Shown here: positions 23,556-40,350 of the stretch, one piece after another
Layout of the letters: each line of letters opens with the position of its first letter
How positions within the stretch are numbered: the first letter of the stretch is position 1
NCBI GenBank assembly: GCA_965202585.1
Contig: OZ241829.1
Location: forward strand, 12,648,001 to 12,712,000
Source of the DNA: Thalia democratica
Lineage: Eukaryota
DNA length: 64,000 nucleotides
Reading direction: 5' to 3'
Made by a program: the position numbers and the translations under genes
The notes under the pieces: generated by a model
Seen by the model: only the letters and a program-made list of their open reading frames with translations
What the model was told of the DNA's origin: nothing
Databases searched by the model: none

Positions 23556-24155
23556 GTAAGTATCATTTATATTTAAAAAAAATCATGATATAAATCAAGC
23601 GTTTTCTACTTTATAGGTAATACTTTTATTATAGCCTATTAGTGATTTGTATTTTTTGTTTAAAACGCGATTTTGTACAAAACTTAAGTTTTTTATAAAT
23701 AAAAAGATTTTTTACTGAACAAACTTTTATGCCGGCTTTATTTGTTTTATATTTAATATTTTTTAACATCAAATATAAACGATTTGAAAACTTAGTTGAG
23801 TTGTCTTTTTTTTTTTTTTAATTTACCAAATTTATTTATTTTGTTAAAACACAAATTTTATTAAAACTTGAGATCAAATTAAAACTAAAAGCTTATTTAT
23901 TTAGTACTGCAAACTGAATAAACTAGTAATTCCGTTTAACAACTTATATTAAACATTATTAATTGTGTTTAAAGAAAACAAGGCAAATTTTGACCTGGGT
24001 ACAACTTCTGAAAAACCTGGATCTAACACAATATTGACATGCGATTTAATTAATACTAATTATTTTACCTAATTTAAAATCTATTTTATTTCGTTTATAT
24101 TTTGTAAACACAATACAAATTATAGTTGTTAATTTAATTTAAGAGTTTTAAGAAA

Positions 24156-27100
24156 ATGGGTGACTGGGGAAACTTTGACCTGGACAAGCTGCTGAAAAAT
24201 CCGGACCTGCTGGACAGCTTCATCGAAAAGAAAGTCACAAAGGAGCGAGTGAATGAGTGGGACAAGAAGAAGAAGCAGAAACCGCAGAAACCGACTCCAA
24301 GTAATTGATCTTTCTGATTTATTTACTTTATTTTAGTTTGTTTAGCAATGTTTCACTAAGTAAACAACACTATTTCGCCTAAACAATGCTAATCATAACT
24401 TATTAGTGACAATACATAAATATTAGGCAAAGATAAATAGCAAGAGAATATTAATAAGAAATAGTTGATTGATCTTGGTTTTTTGTTTAAGTTTGTTAAG
24501 TTTAAATTTTAAGCTAAGAAAAAGGAGACTTGTTATAACCAACGCCAAGTTGTTTAAGAATAACTTAAACTGTCTTTATGTTTAACAGTTTTATAAGTAA
24601 TACTATGTTTTATAAGTGAAAACATTTAACACGTTGGTTTTTATCTACGTTTATAATCAAAAACTTATACTTTGCGTTATATCTAAACTACGTAAAATAT
24701 CTTACGAAAATGTAGAAATTTTTTAAGTCCAGTAAGTTAGTATAATAATAATTTCAGTTAAACTTTATTTAATAAACTAATATTTTCAAATTCTCCTTAA
24801 GCATGTAGATAATAAATTACTATTTCTATTTAAAACAACTGCTTAATAAAACTCAATTCCAGGTTACTACTCGAAGTACCGAATACACTTAAAACTTTTT
24901 CTAAGAAAATAGATCGAAATGATTTATACGTGGTTTTTGACGAATACTCTTTAAAACTACCTTTAATCAAAATAATAACTAAACGTACAAAATTCATCTA
25001 AAAACCAAGGCAACTTTAAAAAATTTATATTACCTGAATTACGTAAGCTGTGTTTAGGTAACAATAATTTAAATCAAATTTTACTTAATATTTTATTCTC
25101 TATAAGCATGTAGTTCACAAATTTTATCACTTTTAAGAGTTACTTTTTAAAACCAAACACCACAGGTTACTACCTGAAGTACCTAAGCTGCGACTACCAG
25201 ACATACTCCAACACAAAAAAAAAATTAAACAAAAATAACTTCAATTAAAATTTTACTTGAAGCGCTTTACTTTATCAACCGCTATGACCAGTACTTAAAA
25301 CCAAACACCACAGGTTACTACCTGAAGTACCTAAGCTGCGACTACCAGACATACTCCAACACAAAAAAAAAATTAAACAAAAATAACTTCAATTAAAATT
25401 TTACTTGAAGCGCTTTACTTTATCAACCGCTATGACCAGTACTTAAAACCAAACACCACAGGTTACTACCTGAAGTACCTAAGCTGCGACTACCAGACAT
25501 ACTCCAACACAAAAAAAAAATTAAACAAAAATAACTTCAATTAAAATTTTACTTGAAGCGCTTTACTTTATCAACCGCTATGACCAGTACTTAAAACCAA
25601 ACACCACAGGTTACTACCTGAAGTACCTAAGCTGCGACTACCAGACATACTCCAACACAAAAAAAAAATTAAACAAAAATAACTTCAATTAAAATTTTAC
25701 TTGAAGCGCTTTACTTTATCAACCGCTATGACCAGTACTTAAAACCAAACACCACAGGTTACTACCTGAAGTACCTAAGCTGCGACTACCAGACATACTC
25801 CAACACAAAAAAAAAATTAAACAAAAATAACTTCAATTAAAATTTTACTTGAAGCGCTTTACTTTATCAACCGCTATGACCAGTACTTAAAACCAAACAC
25901 CACAGGTTACTACCTGAAGTACCTAAGCTGCGACTACCAGACATACTCCAACACAAAAAAAAAATTAAACAAAAATAACTTCAATTAAAATTTTACTTGA
26001 AGCGCTTTACTTTATCAACCGCTATGACCAGTACTTAAAACCAAACACCACAGGTTACTACCTGAAGTACCTAAGCTGCGACTACCAGACATACTCCAAC
26101 ACAAAAAAAAATTAAACAAAAATAACTTCAATTAAAATTTTACTTGAAGCGCTTTACTTTATCAACCGCTATGACCAGTACTTAAAACCAAACACCACAG
26201 GTTACTACCTGAAGTACCTAAGCTGCGACTACCAGACATACTCCAACACAAAAAAAAAAATTAAACAAAAATAACTTCAATTAAAATTTTACTTGAAGCG
26301 CTTTACTTTATCAACCGCTATGACCAGTACTTAAAACCAAACACCACAGGTTACTACCTGAAGTACCAAAGCTGCGACTACCAGACATACTCCAACACAA
26401 AAAAAAAAATTAAACAAAAATAACTTCAATTAAAATTTTACTTGAAGCGCTTTACTTTATCAACCGCTATGACCAGTACTTAAAACCAAACACCACAGGT
26501 TACTACCTGAAGTACCTAAGCTGCGACTACCAGACATACTCCAACACAAAAAAAAAATTAAACAAAAATAACTTCAATTAAAATTTTACTTGAAGCGCTT
26601 TACTTTATCAACCGCTATGACCAGTACTTAAAACCAAACACCACAGGTTACTACCTGAAGTACCTAAGCTGCGACTACCAGACATACTCCAACACAAAAA
26701 AAAATTAAACAAAAATAACTTCAATTAAAATTTTACTTGAAGCGCTTTACTTTATCAACCGCTATGACCAGTACTTAAAACCAAACACCACAGGTTACTA
26801 CCTGAAGTACCTAAGCTGCGACTACCAGACATACTCCAACACAAAAAAAAATTAAACAAAAATAACTTCAATTAAAATTTTACTTGAAGCGCTTTACTTT
26901 ATCAACCGCTATGACCAGTACTTAAAACCAAACACCACAGGTTACTACCTGAAGTACCTAAGCTGCGACTACCAGACATACTCCAACACAAAAAAAAAAT
27001 TAAACAAAAATAACTTCAATTAAAATTTTACTTGAAGCGCTTTACTTTATCAACCGCTATGACCAGTACTTAAAACCAAACACCACAGGTTACTACCTGA

Positions 27101-30100
27101 AGTACCAAAGCTGCGACTACCAGACATACTCCAACACAAAAAAAAATTAAACAAAAATAACTTCAATTAAAATTTTACTTGAAGCGCTTTACTTTATCAA
27201 CCGCTATGACCAGTACTTAAAACCAAACACCACAGGTTACTACCTGAAGTACCTAAGCTGCGACTACCAGACATACTCCAACACAAAAAAAAATTAAACA
27301 AAAATAACTTCAATTAAAATTTTACTTGAAGCGCTTTACTTTATCAACCGCTATGACCAGTACTTAAAACCAAACACCACAGGTTACTACCTGAAGTACC
27401 TAAGCTGCGACTACCAGACATACTCCAACACAAAAAAAAAATTAAACAAAAATAACTTCAATTAAAATTTTACTTGAAGCGCTTTACTTTATCAACCGCT
27501 ATGACCAGTACTTAAAACCAAACACCACAGGTTACTACCTGAAGTACCAAAGCTGCGACTACCAGACATACTCCAACACAAAAAAAAAATTAAACAAAAA
27601 TAACTTCAATTAAAATTTTACTTGAAGCGCTTTACTTTATCAACCGCTATGACCAGTACTTAAAACCAAACACCACAGGTTACTACCTGAAGTACCTAAG
27701 CTGCGACTACCAGACATACTCCAACACAAAAAAAAATTAAACAAAAATAACTTCAATTAAAATTTTACTTGAAGCGCTTTACTTTATCAACCGCTATGAC
27801 CAGTACTTAAAACCAAACACCACAGGTTACTACCTGAAGTACCTAAGCTGCGACTACCAGACATACTCCAACACAAAAAAAAAATTAAACAAAAATAACT
27901 TCAATTAAAATTTTACTTGAAGCGCTTTACTTTATCAACCGCTATGACCAGTACTTAAAACCAAACACCACAGGTTACTACCTGAAGTACCAAAGCTGCG
28001 ACTACCAGACATACTCCAACACAAAAAAAAAATTAAACAAAAATAACTTCAATTAAAATTTTACTTGAAGCGCTTTACTTTATCAACCGCTATGACCAGT
28101 ACTTAAAACCAAACACCACAGGTTACTACCTGAAGTACCTAAGCTGCGACTACCAGACATACTCCAACACAAAAAAAAATTAAACAAAAATAACTTCAAT
28201 TAAAATTTTACTTGAAGCGCTTTACTTTATCAACCGCTATGACCAGTACTTAAAACCAAACACCACAGGTTACTACCTGAAGTACCTAAGCTGCGACTAC
28301 CAGACATACTCCAACACAAAAAAAAAATTAAACAAAAATAACTTCAATTAAAATTTTACTTGAAGCGCTTTACTTTATCAACCGCTATGACCAGTACTTA
28401 AAACCAAACACCACAGGTTACTACCTGAAGTACCTAAGCTGCGACTACCAGACATACTCCAACACAAAAAAAAATTAAACAAAAATAACTTCAATTAAAA
28501 TTTTACTTGAAGCGCTTTACTTTATCAACCGCTATGACCAGTACTTAAAACCAAACACCACAGGTTACTACCTGAAGTACCTAAGCTGCGACTACCAGAC
28601 ATACTCCAACACAAAAAAAAAATTAAACAAAAATAACTTCAATTAAAATTTTACTTGAAGCGCTTTACTTTATCAACCGCTATGACCAGTACTTAAAACC
28701 AAACACCACAGGTTACTACCTGAAGTACCTAAGCTGCGACTACCAGACATACTCCAACACAAAAAAAAATTAAACAAAAATAACTTCAATTAAAATTTTA
28801 CTTGAAGCGCTTTACTTTATCAACCGCTATGACCAGTACTTAAAACCAAACACCACAGGTTACTACCTGAAGTACCTAAGCTGCGACTACCAGACATACT
28901 CCAACACAAAAAAAAAATTAAACAAAAATAACTTCAATTAAAATTTTACTTGAAGCGCTTTACTTTATCAACCGCTATGACCAGTACTTAAAACCAAACA
29001 CCACAGGTTACTACCTGAAGTACCTAAGCTGCGACTACCAGACATACTCCAACACAAAAAAAAAATTAAACAAAAATAACTTCAATTAAAATTTTACTTG
29101 AAGCGCTTTACTTTATCAACCGCTATGACCAGTACTTAAAACCAAACACCACAGGTTACTACCTGAAGTACCTAAGCTGCGACTACCAGACATACTCCAA
29201 CACAAAAAAAAAATTAAACAAAAATAACTTCAATTAAAATTTTACTTGAAGCGCTTTACTTTATCAACCGCTATGACCAGTACTTAAAACCAAACACCAC
29301 AGGTTACTACCTGAAGTACCTAAGCTGCGACTACCAGACATACTCCAACACAAAAAAAAAATTAAACAAAAATAACTTCAATTAAAATTTTACTTGAAGC
29401 GCTTTACTTTATCAACCGCTATGACCAGTACTTAAAACCAAACACTACAGGTTACTACCTGAAGTACCTAAGCTGCGACTACCAGAAATCCACCAACACT
29501 AAGGCCCACCACACGGACAAGTACGTCAACAAGGACCTGGTCGTCAGGAGGAGTCAGGCATTCGACCTGTACGTCAACTTCAAGAACAGGAGCTATGACG
29601 CGTCCAAGGACGCCATCGTCATGGAGTTCACTCTCGGTTGGTTACATGATGTGTTTTAGTTTTGTACCATATTCATAAAATTTTACTTAATTGATAAAAC
29701 TACTATTTAGATATAAGTATTACACCAACTGTTTAATGATTGCACCAAAATGACTTGTTTAAAATTATTAAGGCCATAGGGGGGTAAACCATGTTTTTTA
29801 CAAGTTGATCTTATTTTATAGAGTTTTTTCTAAGTTTCGAGATGCTTTTTATTGTTTTAAAAAATTCAAACTATTTTTTGAGATACGACCAGTCAAAGTC
29901 GGGGCCGCATAATAGGTTCCTTATGGGAAGGGAAAACTAAAACAGCGAAAAAATACTTTTTTATTTAAAATCTATCTTCTCCTACATTTTTCAAGCAATC
30001 TTCTTCAAACTTTCAAAGTCTAATCTTTATACAATAAATAAAAAAGTTTTACTTTGGAATTTTTAAAAAAATCTGTAAAAATTTTTTTTTTTTGAAAAAA

Positions 30101-33100
30101 AAAAACACTTTTTTTTTAATTTTTGTGATAATTTTTTTTTTAAGTTATTAAAGTTCTAAAGTAACGTTTTTTTCTTTTATTATTAGGAATGTTTCCTAAA
30201 AATTTGAAGAAGGTTGCTTGAAAATGAAGGAGGAGATAGATTTTTAGTGAATTTTAAAATTTCCAAGAAAATTGATCCTAAAAAATTTGCGGTCCATACG
30301 TTTATATTGGAAACTTTTTACAAAAAATTGAATATCTCAAAAGTTAAATAGTATTTTTGAATTCTATAAAAACTGGCTTGTAGTTTGTACTTAAAGCTTT
30401 CATATAAAAGCTAATGTTAATTTTTGTAAAAAAAATCTTGGAACCACCTTATGGCCTTAAAAGAAGCTCAATGGGGCTCACTCTTAGTTGGTTGCTTGCT
30501 TGAGAATATTTAATTTAAATGTATTTTTATATAAATATTGTTTAATTTATTTATACTACATAACTTTATTATCAACTGTTTTATGCTTGTCCTGAAATAA
30601 CTTTTTAAATTACAAATAAATATTTAATTTCGGTTGGCTGTTTGCTTTTGCGTTAAAAACCACCTGAACCTGGTGTTTAGCTTGTTTACGGCAAGTAAAA
30701 ACATTCAGCACTAACTAAGTGTGATCTGAAGTAAAAACTTACAAAGTAAAATTTAAAAAGTTTTTTTTTACAGTTTAAGCATAGTTTTATAAACGATGTT
30801 GTCCTTAAGTAGTTTTAGCTCAAAAGTTCTTTTTACTATTTGAACGTGAATTTAGTATCATCTGTTAATGAATGTGCTAGAACATTTTCATCAAATACAA
30901 ACTCTTTAAAGTTTAAACTTTTAATCACCACGGTTATGAAATTGTTTAAAATTGAGGATATTGTGTTCTACTTTAATGCGATATTTATCTAATATCAAAA
31001 CATAACTGTAACATAAATTGTTTTATTATAGCACTAAAATCTCTTGTTTAAAATTAATTAAAGATATTTCTTTTGAAGTTTGAAAGTATTTAACACAAAC
31101 TTTTGAATTTAAAACAAACAAGTGTCGAGTAAAAATGCTTATTACTTACAAAACTCGCGCTTTAACTTTTCCCGTAATTCTTCCACTCTAATTTTTTTTT
31201 CCAACTTGTTTCCAGGCAAGAACCCGACCGAGATGGGGGGCACCAAGATCAGGATGGTCCCCGGGAGCAAGATTGAGGAGGACAAGTGGAGTTGCCAGTT
31301 GCTTGGCAACGACGACGGCAACAAGAGGGTGTCCATCAGGTGAGCGTAAAACACTATTTCAACTTGATACTTTAATAAACAAAATAAACTTTGGTTTTTA
31401 ATTGAACAAAGTGTAAGAAAAAATACTTAAATTTCAGATGAGTGTGAGAATTATACTCTCATAGAAATATGTTTTGAAGTGTAGACATTTGCTGGCAGAA
31501 AAAAATTACTTTTGTTTTTTGATAAAACAAAGTTTAAAAGTAGGTGTATAAATAAACACTTACAACAAAACTGTTTAAAAACTTATTTTATAATAGTTAA
31601 TCTACAAATCTACAACCTAATGTTGCCAATTACTTAACAAACATTAACAAACAACAGTAAGTATAAAACAGCGCTTTTCTGAGCATTAAACAGTAAACTT
31701 GCATAAAAACTTCAGCTTTACTGTTTTCTTTTTTCTTTTCAAACGCCTACAAAAAAAATGCACAGGGTTAATATTCCCAATGTGTAGTATTGTCTTGTAA
31801 ATGTAACAAGTTTTTCTGTTCTAAAGACCTATTTAACTACTAAAGGGTGAACATCCCCAACGATGCGATGGTGGGAAGGTACAGCGTGACGTCAGAGATC
31901 AGGAGCAAATCAGGAAGTCAGGAGTGCACGAGGAGGTACGTCATGCCTGACGTGCTGGTGGTGTTCAACCCCTTCAGCAAAAGTTAGTTTTGCATAAATT
32001 TGTTACAGATGATTTTATATCTGTTTATCTGTTTTATAAAACATTTTTAACAGTTTATGGTATATATAAAAAAATAAAATATCGTAAAAAAGTAATTTAT
32101 TTTTAAAAACACTCGTTTTTGCCTTAGCTTTAGTGCTATCATTGATATTTAAAGCGTTTAATAAGACACTACTGGGCAGTGGGCACCTGCTCAATTTGCT
32201 ACTGCACATTTTCCATGTTTTCACACTTAAACAAAAATACTGTGACTCGATTTTAACTCTTTAAAAAACTGAATTATATTTATTTTTTTAATTAAAAGAA
32301 AATAATAATAAAATTTCATTACTACAAGGTGTATGTGGCTCTGAAAAGACCTTCTAATGTATACATATTAAAAAAAAATTGTAATAAAAATATTCAAACA
32401 AATTAAATACAACAATCAGACGACGAGGTGTACATGGGGAACGAGGCGGAGAGGCAGGAGTACTGCATGGAGGAGAACGGGCTGATCTTCGCCGGGAGCT
32501 GGAACAAGATCGTCAAGATGCACTGGACCTTCGGACAGTTCGAAAAGGACATACTGGACATCACCTTCAGATTATTGAACGAGGACACTACCATGAAGTC
32601 CAACGCGGCCAAGTCCACCAAGATGCACGGGTCGCCCGTGTTCGTGTCCCGGGTGCTGTCCGCAATGGTTCGTTTTGATTTAAATAGGTAAAACGTTTAA
32701 TTTTGATTGTACAATGGTGTAATCTTCCAAGATATTTGTGACTAGTTAGCACCACCTAGCAGTTGAATTTTTTTTAATGTTCGCCATGGTTCTAGTTGTA
32801 AACTTAAAGTATAAGCAAAACATTTATTTTTGAATAAACACATTAGTAATTCGTCAAAAATTTTCAATAAATTTCAAAAGTACAAAAATAATAAAAGTAT
32901 GTATAATTAAATTAAAACATGATACATCTGGCAAATTTTGAAATTTAAAGAACTTCGGGAACAAAAATTTCAAATTATTAAACTATTAAAAAATTCCCTA
33001 AAAACAGATCAACAGCAACGACGACAAGGGAATGCTGGTAGGAAACTGGAGCAGCGATTTCAGCGGAGGGGTCGCCCCCACCCAGTGGACGGCCAGCGCC

Positions 33101-36100
33101 AAGATATTCCGGCAGTGGAACAAGAAGGGGTCGGTGAAGTGGGGACAGTGCTGGGTCTACTCGGCCCTCTTCACTACCGGTCAGTTTGTAAAAAATAATT
33201 AATCTTTGAGATATAAGTTTTTGTTTTTACCACAACAGTTATATTTTGTATTTTCGGTCATGTTTATTTTTGTGTTACAAGGTTTTAAATATTTTTTGAC
33301 CTTTTTTACAACTGGTCAGCTTGTAAAAAAGGTATTATGATTTTATCATTAAATATGAAATTATAAATCAATTTATTTTTTATAGTATCTTAAACACTTG
33401 TTTGATTTCAATTTAAAGTTTGCTTAAAAATAGATCGAGCACAAGATTATTATCACCTTAACAAATTACTTTTTACAAAATAGTTTCAAACGTCTTCATT
33501 TTAATTTCAGCCCTCAGAGCAATTGGTATCCCTGGCAGAACGGTGACAAACTTCAACTCGGCTCACGACACCGAGTTCAACATGTCATTGGACAAATTTT
33601 TCTACGAGGATGGGTCGGAAAATAGCGAGGTAATTCATAATACATATATATATATATATTTAGTTTATTTGTTCAACATGTCACTTGACAAGTTCTTCTA
33701 CGAAGATGGGTCGGAAAACAGCGAGGTAATTCATAATACATATATATATATATATATATTTATTTAGTTTATTTGTTCAACATGTCACTTGACAAGTTCT
33801 TCTACGAAAATGGATCGGAAAATAGCGAGGTTACAAATTATGTAGTGTTGTTTAACTAAGTTGTTTTGCGGGTGAAAAACAAAGGTTTTTAAAAATGTTT
33901 CAAATACTTTAAAAAACTCTTTAAACTTCTTCTAAAATCAATAATAATAAAAACTTCCATACAGTTCGGAGGCAACGACTCGATGTGGAACTTCCACGTT
34001 TGGAACGAGGCGTGGATGAAAAGGTCCGACCTCACCCACGGAAGCGAGTACGACGGGTGGCAGGCCGTGGACGGGACCCCCCAGGAGAAATCCGGCAAGG
34101 TTTTCAGGTGAGGGACTTTTTCAAAAAAAAAAATGCAAACGATCAAAAATGTTAGATTGCTAAAAAAACACATGTAAAAAGTTAATTGTTTGGAATGTAA
34201 CAATACAACAAGTAGTACTCTGTAAAAACTATAAATGATTTTTTGAATTTGTATATATAACTATGATCCTTGATTACTGTTTTTATTTTCAGGTGCGGGC
34301 CATCTCCTTTACTGGCCATCAAGAGAGGAGAGGTCAACATCGGTTACGATACCGACTTCTTGTTCGGCGAGGTTCATTTATTTATTTTTTATCGTTTAAA
34401 TATTTATTAGGTTAAAGAGCTTTCAGAAACTTGATTGTGTGTAAAGCGTTTAAAAAAATAGCCAAAAAATTAAATAAAATAATAATAGTAGTTTAGAAAC
34501 ATTTATAGTTTGAGCTTTTCAAATTAAGGGCTTAAAAATAATTTTTGTTCTATTTTTTAATAACTTCGTTTAAATATTCAAACTAAAAGATTTTAAACCA
34601 AACTAAATACTAATCTATCAACCAATATTGTATATATCAGTATCAGCTTCAATTTAAATACTGCAAACTAAGCTAAATTGTAACGAATCAACCAGGTGAG
34701 TGTGAAATTGTTTGCTAAAAAAAATTTAAAACAAAACTGAAGCCTATAATTTATCAGCATATAAAACAACTCAAACAACTTAAAAATTAAATAAACTTAA
34801 CTAATTACGCCACCAGGTAAACACAATACATACACAACTTTTTTTTCTTTATCTGTATAACGACGTTTCGCAGAAAAACGGCTCTCTAGATACAATAAAA
34901 ATTTGAAAGATAACACAGAGCGATGAAATACAACTAAAAATATTTTTGTAGCTTTAATAAAATTTTTAATAATTAAACTAAATTTAACCAGGTGAACGCG
35001 GACGAGTGCAAGTGGCAGTTGAACGAGAGCGACAAGATCGTGAAGATGCTGAAGAAGGACACAAGGAAGTGCGGGAAGAAGATCAGCACGAAGGCGGTGG
35101 GAGCCTTCAAGAGGTTGGACGTCACCAACCTGTACAAGTTCGATGAAGGTTTGTATTTTGTCTTTTATATGGTACGCACTTTCAGAGGTAAGCACCATCG
35201 TAAAAAAATCACTGAGTCTTGAAGGTCTGCGTAAAATAGGGTTACATTAATTTGGTTGTCAATAAAGTCAATTAAAAACTTTTTGTAACAATTCAACACA
35301 AGATAAGAAACTTAATCTAGTGTACTTTGCTTCTTTTAATTCAGAGCAAAAACATTAAACATGTAACTGCTTAAAAAATAAACTCAACTATCAAGTAGCT
35401 TCAATAAACTTAATAAAACACAAACAAGATTATTGACAATAACTTAAAGAAAATTTCTATCTTCTTACAAACATTACTTTTTCTTGAATTCACCAACCAA
35501 TCACTCTTGATTTATTTTATTCAACTTCAAATAAACCCAGGAACAAAGGAGGAGCGTGACGCCATGGAGAAGGCCAAGTTGAGGGGCAAGCAGCCCAAGT
35601 GGCACAACAAGTTCCAAATGCACAAGGAAGGACCCATACAAATAACCATCCACCCCAAGCAGCCCAAGTTCGTCACCGGGCAACCAATTGTCTTCACTGT
35701 CAATGTGAGTTGTTGGTAAACAGTGTTGAGAATGTCATTAAAACGTTAGAAATAAGTTCTGTAAAGAACTTGTACATAAACACAAGTTATATATGTTATT
35801 TTTACTTTCTTGTTAAAGCCGTGTTAATGTTAGTACATACTTGTAAAATATTTTTTTGTTGTTTAGAATATGCTAAAAAATTAATTCAATAAAGAGATTT
35901 TTATCTTGTTAATTATTTTAATAAATTTAAAATGAATTAAGTAAAAGGTTGTACATATGGTAAGTTTTTTTTTTGTTTTTAACGATCAGCTTCAGTAAAT
36001 TTATCAAGTGATAAAGAAAGCAGTAATATTACTTGTTTCATAGAATGCATCCTTTAATTTCAACCAGAACTTTTATGTAAAAAATCCAAAAAAAAAAAAA

Positions 36101-38457
36101 ATTTCTTGTGAACGTCTTCGATGGGCTAAAAGTTAAACTTCTTAAGGTTAAGAAAGCAATGGTTTCAAAAAGTCTAAGAAAAAGCTAAACAAGAAATTAA
36201 AAAAAAAATAGAATACTAACAAGTGTTAAACTTTTTACATTTTTATGTATTCAACGTTTCAGGTGCTGAACACTACATCGGCTGCTCAGGAGTGCAAGAT
36301 CACCAGCAGGATTGAGAGCATGTTCTACACCGGGAAGAGGAAGTCCGGAGTGAAGCAGGTCGTCGAGAACAAAGTGATCAACGCCAAGCAGAGTGAGAAT
36401 TTTTTGAATAATTTTTTTCAGTAATATTTAACAGTAATAAGTTTGTTTTTCAATGAGTTTCTCATATTAGTAGCTTCATTGAGGTGGTTGAGAAGTAGGT
36501 GATCAACGCTAAGCAGAATAAAAAGAAATTTATGAATTTATTTTTAAATGTACTTTAAGCTAAAATAGTTTTTAAAGCCTAAGTTTTTATATAGTTTACT
36601 TATTTGAAAGTTTATCTTTTACTTTACTCTTTAAGGTTAATTAAGTTAAAAAACTTTTTGTGGAAATTCTTTTTAATGGAGTATAGTTGTAAGACAAAAC
36701 GTTACTTAATACAAGTTTAAGTATAAGATTTATACATCCTACAAGCTAAAAAATTCATAAAGTAAACAATGTATGCACATACACTTTTCCTAACTTGTTT
36801 ACAATTGATAAAATAGATTGATTTAAATGTTTTAAAACATATTACAACAAATCAGTATAGTTACTACTTATTAGCGTAATTAAAACTTTTTTAATTAACA
36901 ATCATGCTAACAAAAGCTTAGCTTAAACACTGAAGCAGCTTGTGTAACTAGATTTTTTGAAAATACATTTAATAATGTTAAAATAGTACTCAATACAAAA
37001 AACAAAAACTCTATATCTGAATTTTAAAAAATATCAAAACATATCTGCTTAAACTTCATTTAGTATCATAATAACTTTGGTAGTTTTGTATCAGTATTAT
37101 TTTATACAAACTTTACCGACATTCAGTGCGACATTGCTGCTTTGAGAAAATTGATTTCACTAAAATAAACAAAGCTGTATATCTGGATATTTAAAAGTAA
37201 ATTAAAACAAAAATTACCACCAAACTTGATAAATTTGTATTAGTGTTTTATTCTTTTTTTTATTGAACCCCACAGACGTTCAATTTGACGTCACCGCTTC
37301 TTTCGCCGAGTACGGTTTCGTTATTTCGCCCTGCAACAGCTTCCGGTGCGTCACTTCCGTGAAGAACCTCAAAACAAACGACATGTACCTGGACACCGGT
37401 TCCACGGTGCTCAAGCATCCAAAAGTTCTCACCATTTGCGTTAGTTGTTACATCAGTAGTAAACATAGTTTGTGTTTTTAAGCTTGTTTTTTAAAGTGTC
37501 AATTTGTTTTATTATTTGTTAGAAAAACATATACAACCTTTGTTGTTAGCTGAAAATAAATAAAAAGTTCTTTTTTTACTTTATTTATTAGCTTCTGCTG
37601 TGCTTTTTGTTTAATTATTAAACAATAAAACTCAAATTTATTAACAACAAAAGTTTTATTTAGACTTACAATATAACTTTTGCTTTTTTAATTTATCTAA
37701 GTTTGTATAAAAAAAAAGTAGTTTCAGCTTAGTTTAGATGGTCATTTTTAATCATAATAAAACATTTTAAAGGGACCGACTCAAGCGAAGCAGGGTAAAT
37801 TCTCATTCAAGTATGACGTCACTAACCCGTTTCCGATCGCGCTGAGCCACTGCAAGCTGACACTAGAGGGAGTCGGACTTGACGGAGAAGTTGACTTCAC
37901 GTTTGTTATTTATAATTGTTATTGCTTGTAAGATAGAAAACTTTTAAGAACTTTAAATTCAAATAACTGAAAATTGGCAACATGATACATTTGCTGCTTT
38001 TTCTATTTATTTTACACAATTTAATAAACTTAATTACTAAGCAAAAGTATAATATAATTAAATTAGAATTTTTTATATTTTTATACGTACATCAATAAAA
38101 AAACTAACAGTTTTAGATGCTTCAATAAATGAGACATGTATTTTATTTTTTACTTTCTACAGTTTATTAAATTAAAATAACTGATTGGACAGCTGTATAC
38201 TTTTTGAACGTGCATAGTATCTTTTGTCATCTAAGTATGTACTTCAATTCTTTAAAAACTTTAAACACAGTTAGTCACTGACACAAATTTTCAACCAAAA
38301 AATTTCAAAACCCAGGAACCCGATAGTGGCGAACGGCAAGATGAGCGGAACGGTGGAGGTGAACGGGACGAGGAAGGGAAAGGTGAAGGTGGTGGGCAAC
38401 TTCCAGAGCAAGGAGCTGTCCAGCATCAAGACCAAGTGTCAGGTTGACATCCAGTAA
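24156..38457 (+). CDS. Transglutaminase (protein-glutamine gamma-glutamyltransferase), 15 coding exons, 745 aa
   Basis: Exons 24156-24300, 29451-29636, 31216-31339, 31846-31982, 32420-32667, 33008-33179, 33511-33629, 33965-34107, 34293-34371, 34992-35148, 35541-35704, 36263-36392, 37276-37439, 37773-37900, 38316-38457 join in frame (2238 nt, all GT-AG). Motifs: AHHTD, LVVRR, catalytic Cys [15 protein letters not shown], His WNFHVW, Asp [11 protein letters not shown]. Confidence 0.95.
25147..29486 (+). repeat. Homogeneous ~148-bp minisatellite, ~30 units, built from the intron/exon-2 junction of the transglutaminase
   Basis: First acceptor AG ends at 25165 and the last at 29450 (4285 nt, 29 periods). 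Units differ mainly in A-run length and a T>A variant in four units (~26367, ~27107, ~27549, ~27992). Confidence 0.97.
29772..30456. mobile_element. MITE with GGCCATAGG terminal inverted repeats and TTAA target-site duplication (Kolobok-like by TSD and RR termini)
   Basis: TTAA|GGCCATAGGGGG ... CCTTATGGCC|TTAA; internal sequence shared with copies at 60308-61706. Confidence 0.75.
33575..33829 (+). repeat. Tandem triplication of the 3' half of transglutaminase exon 7 with its donor site
   Basis: Copies start at 33575, 33671 and 33775 (periods 96 and 104 nt), each ending GAG|GT, separated by (TA)n. Confidence 0.95.
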
Positions 38458-40350
38458 AAGTGTCAAGTTGACATCCATTAAAAGTGTCAAGTTGGCGTCC
38501 AGTGAAGTATCTGCTGGCATATTTACTCAGAAAAATTGTTGTGCATGAATTTTGTTTTTATTTTGTTTATTTTAAAAAGCTTAAACTCAAATTAGCTTAA
38601 ATCTAACTTTGCATGAAATCGTTTTATTGTGTTTACCCTAACCCGCTTTAACATATTTTTTTAAGAAAACATGTATTTGACAGTTTACAGCATACTTTAA
38701 CTTTTATATTTAAAAAAAAAGTAATAATTTATTAAAATTTACTTCATTATAACTATATTCATTATATTGTTTCGTGTTTTTCAAAATTGTGGCAAGCATG
38801 TTACTAATAAAGTATGTATAGGTTGTATTTGTAATAACTTCGTAAATAGTATTCAAAGTAGTAATAATAAAAGCTAGATCTTATTTATGAAATAACTTGG
38901 ATTATCAAAAATCTAGTCTATTGATGTAAGGATATAAGCTAAAAAATTAAGCTATATATAACTTACACAATTTTAAGGTTCTCAATGTTGCCACGAGTAC
39001 CTTAACTTTATAAGTTTACAGTTTATAATAATCTTATTTACAGAACCAGATAAATCAAATAAAACAAAACCAACATAGTTACTTATGAGAGTCTAAAAAG
39101 TATAATTGCAAAATGATCTAAAACAGTTTTTTATAATTTAGAATAGATATTTGAAATAACATTTAAAATCGATCTCATAAAAACGAGAGGTATGATATCT
39201 TAGATATTAGTTTTTCATTATAAATTTCAAATAATAAAATTTATTTAAAACTAAACTGTTACTTATCCTAAATGTATAGAAAATACTGTTATAAAATAAT
39301 AACTAAAAAACTACAATCAAAATTAATTTGCTGAACACGATAAATTCCAAAAGTTTAACTTTTTACCAATATAATTTAAAAAACTTAACTTATTTTTTTA
39401 TTTGATACTTAAAATAGTTTAAATAAATTAACTCTCTCACAAAAGAATACTAATAACAGTTTAGGTTACAAATCAAAGTGGTTTTTGTAAGTAAGACGAG
39501 CTAAACAAACTAAGTCTTATTGGTAGACTAATTAATCTTTTAAAATTAGTTTGAGCAGAATTAGTAGTATATGAAAAACAGTTTGGTGTTCAGTTACACA
39601 TATACAACAACTACAAACTTGAAATATTTTACTACAAACAAGTGCTTTTAAACTTTGTATTTAGTACTTTTAAAAGACTTAGTTTTTGATAAAGTAGTAT
39701 GAACACTAGTAGAAAAAGAAAAAAAATTAAAAAAGCTACAATAATAAAAATATACTCTTAAAAGGATATTTTTAAAAGAAACATTTAAGTGGAACAAAAC
39801 ATCAAACATTCGTTTGTGCAACCTTGGTAAGTATTTAAAACGATTATAAACTGATATTAGTTACCTTAGTTTAAAAAGCTGGAAACTTTTAAAGTATTTT
39901 GAAATATACAAATGCTTTTATACTTTGAGTTTCGTACTTTTTTACTTTTTAGTTTCGGATAAAGCATTAAACACTTATGAAAAGTTAAGGCCATTATAAA
40001 CAATAAATCATGTTTAAAATTTAGATAAAAAGTTTTATTGATAACTTTGAAAACCCCGGCTTGAGTATAAATTTTTTAACAATCAAGCATACCGCGTTTT
40101 CATCATAATTTTTTAAACAACAAAACTAATAAACTCACAGTTTTGCAATAGTTATATGCAATAACATGTTTTGAAACGAGCAAAACAATTGTTTAGAAAG
40201 AAATGTACTAAAAAGTTCTTTTATACAGAAAATTTACCGTGTCAGCTAAAATATTTTAGCAGTAATAAACACCATGAAACTTTAAAACTAGCTTAATGGT
40301 TTATAAGTATAAACATTCTTCAACAGAGGAATAAAAATGTTGTCAAAAAT

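Follow-up and report, generated by a model that had tools for sequence, protein, structure and literature searches.

Tandem repeats that reiterate a splice junction are best known from amphioxus, where repeats spanning exon/intron boundaries were named "mirages" in the Adh3 gene (PMC3087553; PMC3902484). Mirages are described in Adh3, in the globin genes BflGb6 and BflGb9, in TnC and in PGBD5; regular splicing is undisturbed by them, and their units evolve in concert, with edge units excluded (PMC3087553; PMC3902484). The BflGb6 mirage combines the 3' end of an intron with the 5' part of exon 2 in units of 150-160 bp, present in 3-6 copies (PMC3087553). The globin paper ties mirages to the Rogers model, in which introns are gained by tandem duplication of AGGT-containing sequence (PMC3087553). 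Here we describe an array of this kind in intron 1 of a transglutaminase gene, at 25147-29499 on the forward strand of a 64-kb stretch of contig OZ241829.1 (the window; all coordinates refer to it). The array places 29 decoy 3' splice sites in front of the true acceptor of exon 2, at 29451.

Human arrays of a related type reiterate the donor side of a junction. They include the 37-bp variable number tandem repeat (VNTR) in IVS7 of F7, the 25 pseudo-sites of IFI6 (6-16), and repeats in CBS, LMNB2 and PDGF (PMC1557585). The F7 pseudo-sites are functional but silent, and a 5'-to-3' scanning model was proposed for F7; regular splicing is undisturbed in most such arrays, with IFI6 and CBS additionally using the two pseudo-sites closest to the exon (PMC1557585). 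Our literature search for acceptor-side VNTRs or tunicate cases returned none beyond the amphioxus repeats and these human donor-side arrays. The first-pass annotation of the window, which was made without searches, knew of no described case. This needs correcting, as the amphioxus mirages include the exact acceptor-side layout (PMC3087553) and the human donor-side arrays were studied experimentally (PMC1557585). The array belongs with the amphioxus mirages and the human F7/IFI6-type repeats: it is a large new example of a known repeat type, the mirage, and not a new splicing regulator.

Structure and history of the array

Tandem Repeats Finder (TRF) returned a single array at 25147-29499, with a period of 148, 29.5 copies and 99% matches. 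Unit length ranges from 147 to 149 bp, and the array takes up 84% of the 5.15-kb intron 1. An 18-nt anchor, ACAGGTTACTACCTGAAG, occurs exactly 30 times at a spacing of 147-149 nt, and the 35-nt start of exon 2 also occurs 30 times, against 0 expected from shuffles. These counts, together with the DNA word depth given below, bear out the roughly 29 decoys of the first-pass annotation. Each unit carries CACCACAG|GT and the first 36 nt of exon 2, with the exon-like starts of the 29 decoys spanning 25166 to 29303. The real junction lies in the last, partial unit: copy 30, at 29451, is the only one that continues into the Transglut_N coding sequence. Variation between units is confined to the length of an A-run (9, 10 or 11) and to one T/A site that differs in four units. 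These variants are ordered along the array, part of the pattern having a three-unit period.

Decoys 2-29 match the true acceptor from about -110 to +36, with the exception of the base at -5. As had been noticed at the outset, all 29 decoys read CACCACAG|GT and copy 30 alone reads CACTACAG|GT. After exon base 36 the sequences part, the decoys reading ACATACTCC and true exon 2 reading AAATCCACC. Downstream of each decoy the sequence is A-rich and offers only GT sites of the GTACCT or GTACTT type. When exon 1 is joined to a decoy in silico, translation stops after 68 (A9), 72 (A11) or 75 (A10) codons; every decoy frame is closed, as had been predicted for all three A-run lengths.

The unit was compared with known sequence classes. 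A search of Rfam with the array edge and first units matched no family, and the unit thus does not correspond to any known RNA gene. When the rest of the window was screened with the unit by low-stringency BLAST, only marginal matches appeared apart from two old copies upstream of the array; within this window the unit is therefore not a dispersed repeat.

Both old copies lie on the forward strand. The first, at 24780-24884, is a diverged copy of the intron end and exon 2 start (ccag|GTTACTACTCGAAGTACCGAA), detected by local alignment to 25088-25187 with a score of 57, compared with 21 +/- 2.8 for shuffles. The second (25026-25165) forms the array's 5' edge as a degenerate unit whose exon-start part lacks AG|GT; global alignment to the whole 148-nt unit gave z = 9.2 against shuffles. 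Core units that are 99% alike, next to an edge unit and an outlying copy that are strongly diverged, form the pattern of concerted evolution. The unit had been read as the 3' end of the intron followed by the exon start. The exon part of that description stands, but agreement with the sequence preceding the first unit is limited to the 19 nt immediately before the AG, while the other ~93 nt of the intronic part are a diverged derivative. From these alignments the junction appears to have been duplicated repeatedly, with the core homogenised and the 5' edge decaying.

A related lineage gives an indication of age. The 95-aa protein P0001, 98% identical at the exon 2 peptide, is encoded by a 607-nt marine metagenome contig (L001), whose exon 2 is 95.7% identical to the window. 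The true acceptor of L001 is preceded by 130 nt that resemble the unit (78% identity) and whose first bases belong to a preceding decoy exon start, suggesting that the array is older than the split from this lineage. In a more distant homologue (L002; exon 2 identity 55%, possibly not an orthologue), an exon-1-like exon is followed by an array-free intron of about 190 nt. Taken together, these comparisons suggest that the array predates the L001 split, is lineage-restricted and has been kept uniform by concerted evolution. The L001 true acceptor has A at -5. The T at this position had been put forward as the feature that sets the true site apart, and we rejected it as a conserved discriminator on the basis of L001; to judge from these two lineages, the -5 base is simply variable.

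Acceptor choice in assembled RNA

The RNA evidence consists of assembled contigs placed on 28110-33300, a region comprising the last nine decoys and exons 2-6. Three runs were compared: X6, from the source species (same organism and study as the DNA run X10), and X1 and X2 (marine metatranscriptome). In X6 the exons were covered and the unique introns were not. A 136-nt X6 contig with a depth of 79 was placed on 29444-29548, and its preceding letters are those of 24264-24293. The next seven letters fit the end of exon 1, ACTCCAA, as deduced from the two mismatches of the contig to the intron end. The contig is therefore the junction of 24300 with 29451, in which the seven overlapped bases are deduced, and the last 37 nt of exon 1 precede exon 2 in the X6 contigs (again with partly deduced letters). 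A second X6 allele, also at a depth of 79, has the same 24300/29451 junction, with synonymous changes in exon 1 and a GT to GC change at 29452. In X2, a 168-nt contig with a depth of 536 shows the same exon 1/exon 2 junction together with five L001-type variants, so the related L001-type lineage also splices to its own true acceptor. Further downstream, RNA contigs join 29636 to 31216, the letters before exon 3 being the end of exon 2.

The two X6 haplotypes, equal in depth, carry several synonymous differences (29452, 29488, 29500, 29560 and, in exon 1, 24284). This high haplotype diversity contrasts with the 99% uniformity of the array units.

The array itself was silent over most of the region covered. 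In the bins at 28284-29327, depth was 0 in X6, X1 and X2, compared with 49-811 on exon 2, and unit contigs can be placed in these bins, as a contig from the DNA run shows. No contig with a decoy junction, or with unit sequence at appreciable depth, was found in the three runs, in contigs that drop rare isoforms. The first-pass annotation had proposed comparing junctions from the donor at 24300 to a decoy with those to the true acceptor; in the assembled RNA all of them go to 29451 and none to a decoy. The dominant junction thus joins exon 1 to the last acceptor. At the contig level regular splicing is intact, in two X6 alleles and in X2.

Thirty 3' splice sites that are alike through the first 36 nt of the exon, of which the cell picks the last, make an unusually clean natural experiment. 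The locus is fairly described as a natural test of exon definition over first-AG scanning, and the RNA contigs show that the last acceptor wins. Since the decoys share the branch region, the tract, the AG and the first 36 exon nt with the true site, the choice must come from beyond +36. Acceptors that are A-rich and have weak pyrimidine tracts are used, with RNA support, at exons 5 and 6 of the same gene, and so the acceptor itself cannot explain the choice. Transcription order would favour the first decoy. The outcome therefore argues that information downstream of +36 (exon body and donor), rather than the acceptor or the order of transcription, decides. We infer that exon definition is the cause: the last copy would be chosen as the only one with real exon sequence and a used 5' splice site 186 nt downstream (29637). 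The decoy hexamer CCACAG had also been said to serve as an acceptor at exon 13. The homology-based model does place ccccacag|ACG there, with the exon starting at about 37276, but behind a T-rich tract that is unlike the decoys.

Origin of the array and competing readings

The array is most likely a mirage minisatellite that arose by tandem amplification of a segment spanning the intron 1/exon 2 boundary, with little or no regulatory role. A duplication across this boundary would be harmless as long as the spliceosome picks the copy still attached to the exon body; being neutral while the inner copy is chosen, such duplications can grow into arrays that extend into the intron. Unequal crossing-over or replication slippage may then have expanded the array into the intron and kept its core homogeneous, while units at the 5' edge decay. 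An originally short intron would in this way have been inflated to 5.15 kb by array growth.

Comparison with the described systems is consistent with this origin. The acceptor-side layout and the unit size are shared with BflGb6, and the array resembles the amphioxus mirages in general in that a splice site is reiterated, splicing is intact, the core is concerted and edge units have escaped. It differs from BflGb6 in having 29 units instead of 3-6, at an identity of 99% compared with 81-100%, and from the amphioxus cases in its host, apparently another chordate lineage. Length or somatic instability was shown for the Adh3 mirage; for the present array, copy number was estimated from the word depth of a single DNA sample. 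With the human F7/IFI6-type arrays it has in common that the end unit spans the exon boundary and that splicing takes the site joined to the exon body; those arrays, however, reiterate 5' splice sites downstream of an exon, and the present one 3' splice sites upstream. It is accordingly not an F7-type array, although the same gene has a separate donor-side repeat in three copies at 33575-33870. Use of pseudo-sites near the exon, as in IFI6 and CBS, was not visible in our RNA contigs. The F7 scanning model predicts use of the first site, which was not observed, and so does not carry over. As in the Rogers model, an AG|GT-containing duplication is tolerated and the extra copy is spliced out, but here an existing intron was enlarged and no new intron created.

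Several points weigh against this interpretation. Exon definition as the cause of acceptor choice is inferred. The 5' splice sites of the gene are loose, several of them starting with GTT, which makes the label "weak" for the GT sites of the unit uncertain. Contig placement took in the last nine units only, and exon 1 and exon 2 were not placed together. In X6 a depth of 2.81 was recorded in the first bin of the array only (28110-28283), for which possible sources are a pre-mRNA signal multiplied 29-fold, carried-over DNA and decoy RNA. Finally, assembled contigs drop rare variants and nonsense-mediated decay (NMD) thins isoforms with premature termination codons, so decoy use of a few per cent could be invisible.

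These last two points leave some room for decoys that act. The first-pass annotation saw in the array a copy-number-dependent splicing rheostat: a fraction of transcripts would splice to a decoy, meet a stop within 68-75 codons and enter NMD or yield a short peptide (about 75 aa), so that the number of units would tune transglutaminase output. The sites themselves would allow this, being identical to the true one from about -110 to +36 besides the -5 base, with a stop in every decoy frame and with A-rich, weak-tract acceptors demonstrably used at exons 5 and 6; the X6 signal in one array bin and the concealment of decoy isoforms both by contig assembly and by NMD point the same way. Against it, none of the three RNA runs has a decoy junction or a notable unit contig despite an exon 2 depth of 100-800. 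X6 holds about 6% of the sampled words of 24100-25461, a stretch in which two units make up about 22%, and this share is therefore too small to include those units. A search of a large protein collection for proteins of 26-84 aa with the exon 1 peptide found none, which is a weak negative, as fragments of the true junction were likewise not found. Regular splicing remains undisturbed in the arrays of this type that have been described, and the distant homologue L002 has no array, so it is probably not a conserved regulatory device. We consider the rheostat unlikely, with neither decoy contigs nor a short protein to support it. The broader proposition that the decoys are not inert, either because a small, copy-number-dependent share is bound for NMD or because they serve as stepping stones, so that array length tunes transglutaminase output, is similarly improbable.

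Stepping stones would imply recursive splicing. Exon 1 would join a decoy, the regenerated CAA|GTTACT would act as a donor, and the intron would be removed stepwise to leave the same final mRNA. Known ratchet points regenerate a strong donor and are single conserved sites in very long introns. The array resembles them in having an acceptor that directly abuts a donor (AG|GT) within an intron, a motif present in every unit; the real donors GTTGGT, GTTAGT and GTTCGT (29637, 31983 and 32668) show that T at +3 is tolerated, and the final mRNA would be identical to the product of direct splicing. The regenerated donor nevertheless looks poor, CAA|GTTACT departing from the consensus at -1, +3 and +5, whereas all three of these RNA-supported donors have G at +5. 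The identical site at the start of true exon 2 is evidently unused, as contigs carry the exon 1/exon 2 and exon 2/exon 3 junctions, and there were no intermediates among the RNA contigs. The array further differs from ratchet points in being a young, homogenised repeat with no sign of use, in an intron of 5.15 kb that is far shorter than those in which known recursive sites lie. This mechanism is therefore even less likely than the rheostat.

Finally, the presence of the array in reads was assessed. Runs X10 and X11, which are from one organism, contain 96% and 91%, respectively, of the words of 24100-25461. Word depth in X10 is 743 for a 178-nt unit contig, compared with 31-37 for contigs of the unique flanks, a ratio of about 22-fold where a mean of 26.5-fold is expected from the assembly (these depths are rough). 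The array is thus present in the reads at roughly its assembled copy number, though X10 is possibly the assembly's own sample, so that depth shows consistency and not independent proof. An identical 11% of the words of 24100-25461 was present in each of three marine DNA metagenomes drawn from two studies (X12-X14), probably reflecting the multi-copy unit alone, which would imply a high-copy array in wild populations. That an assembler over-expanded one or a few units is very improbable: although the only DNA run holding the region may be the assembly's source and no spanning long read was examined, the unit depth, the ordered and partly three-unit pattern of A-run and single-base variants, the 11% share in the marine metagenomes, which would fit a multi-copy unit, and the independent L001 contig, which breaks inside a unit before the true exon, all speak against it.

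The host gene and other repeats in the window

Exon 1 occupies 24156-24300 on the forward strand, with its ATG at 24156, a length of 145 nt, phase 1 and the donor CCAA|GTAATT at 24301, as defined by open reading frame and RNA contigs. True exon 2 (29451-29636, forward strand, 186 nt) holds the start of Transglut_N and lies between the acceptor CACTACAG|GT and the donor CTCG|GTTGGT, supported by Pfam and RNA contigs; the region matches the Transglut_N profile from position 2 with E = 3.8e-15. A tblastn search with the 700-aa transglutaminase P0008 gave 15 exons up to about 38440. An arthropod origin of the gene was dropped because the nearest transglutaminase clusters are chordate; the sequence is contained in marine plankton data sets. 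Beyond the RNA-supported GTT donors, the homology model alone places GTTCAT, GTTTGT and GTTGAC in later exons, and position +3 of the 5' splice site seems to follow a relaxed consensus in this organism.

The donor-side repeat at 33575-33870 contains the last 55 nt of exon 7 with GCGAG|GTAATT, three times over. Its copies have a period of 96-104 and 70-89% identity, their differences are mostly synonymous, and a homologue needs one copy only. This repeat and the intron 1 array are the only two sizeable tandem arrays in the 64-kb window, and each of them spans a splice junction of the transglutaminase gene. This hints at junction-linked repeat generation rather than random minisatellite birth. 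It also hints that junction-spanning arrays may be unusually frequent in this genome; if they are common there, the species would provide many replicate tests of splice-site choice and of the origin of such minisatellites. Their frequency is a genome-wide question, beyond what one locus can settle.

Other repeats were observed in and around the gene. Intron 2 measures 1579 nt in the window compared with 262 nt in L001. At 29676-30545 it contains a very high-copy repeat represented by many contig variants; its word depth in the DNA run sums to about 5e5-1e6, where unique sequence has about 35. The repeat is also found in the RNA runs and is absent from L001; it has the look of an abundant mobile element that inserted recently. 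At 38424-38503, about three copies of a 24-bp unit straddle the transglutaminase coding end and stop codon, forming a further small repeat at a gene-structure boundary. Downstream of the gene, TRF detected mirrored small repeats at 39915 and 45843.

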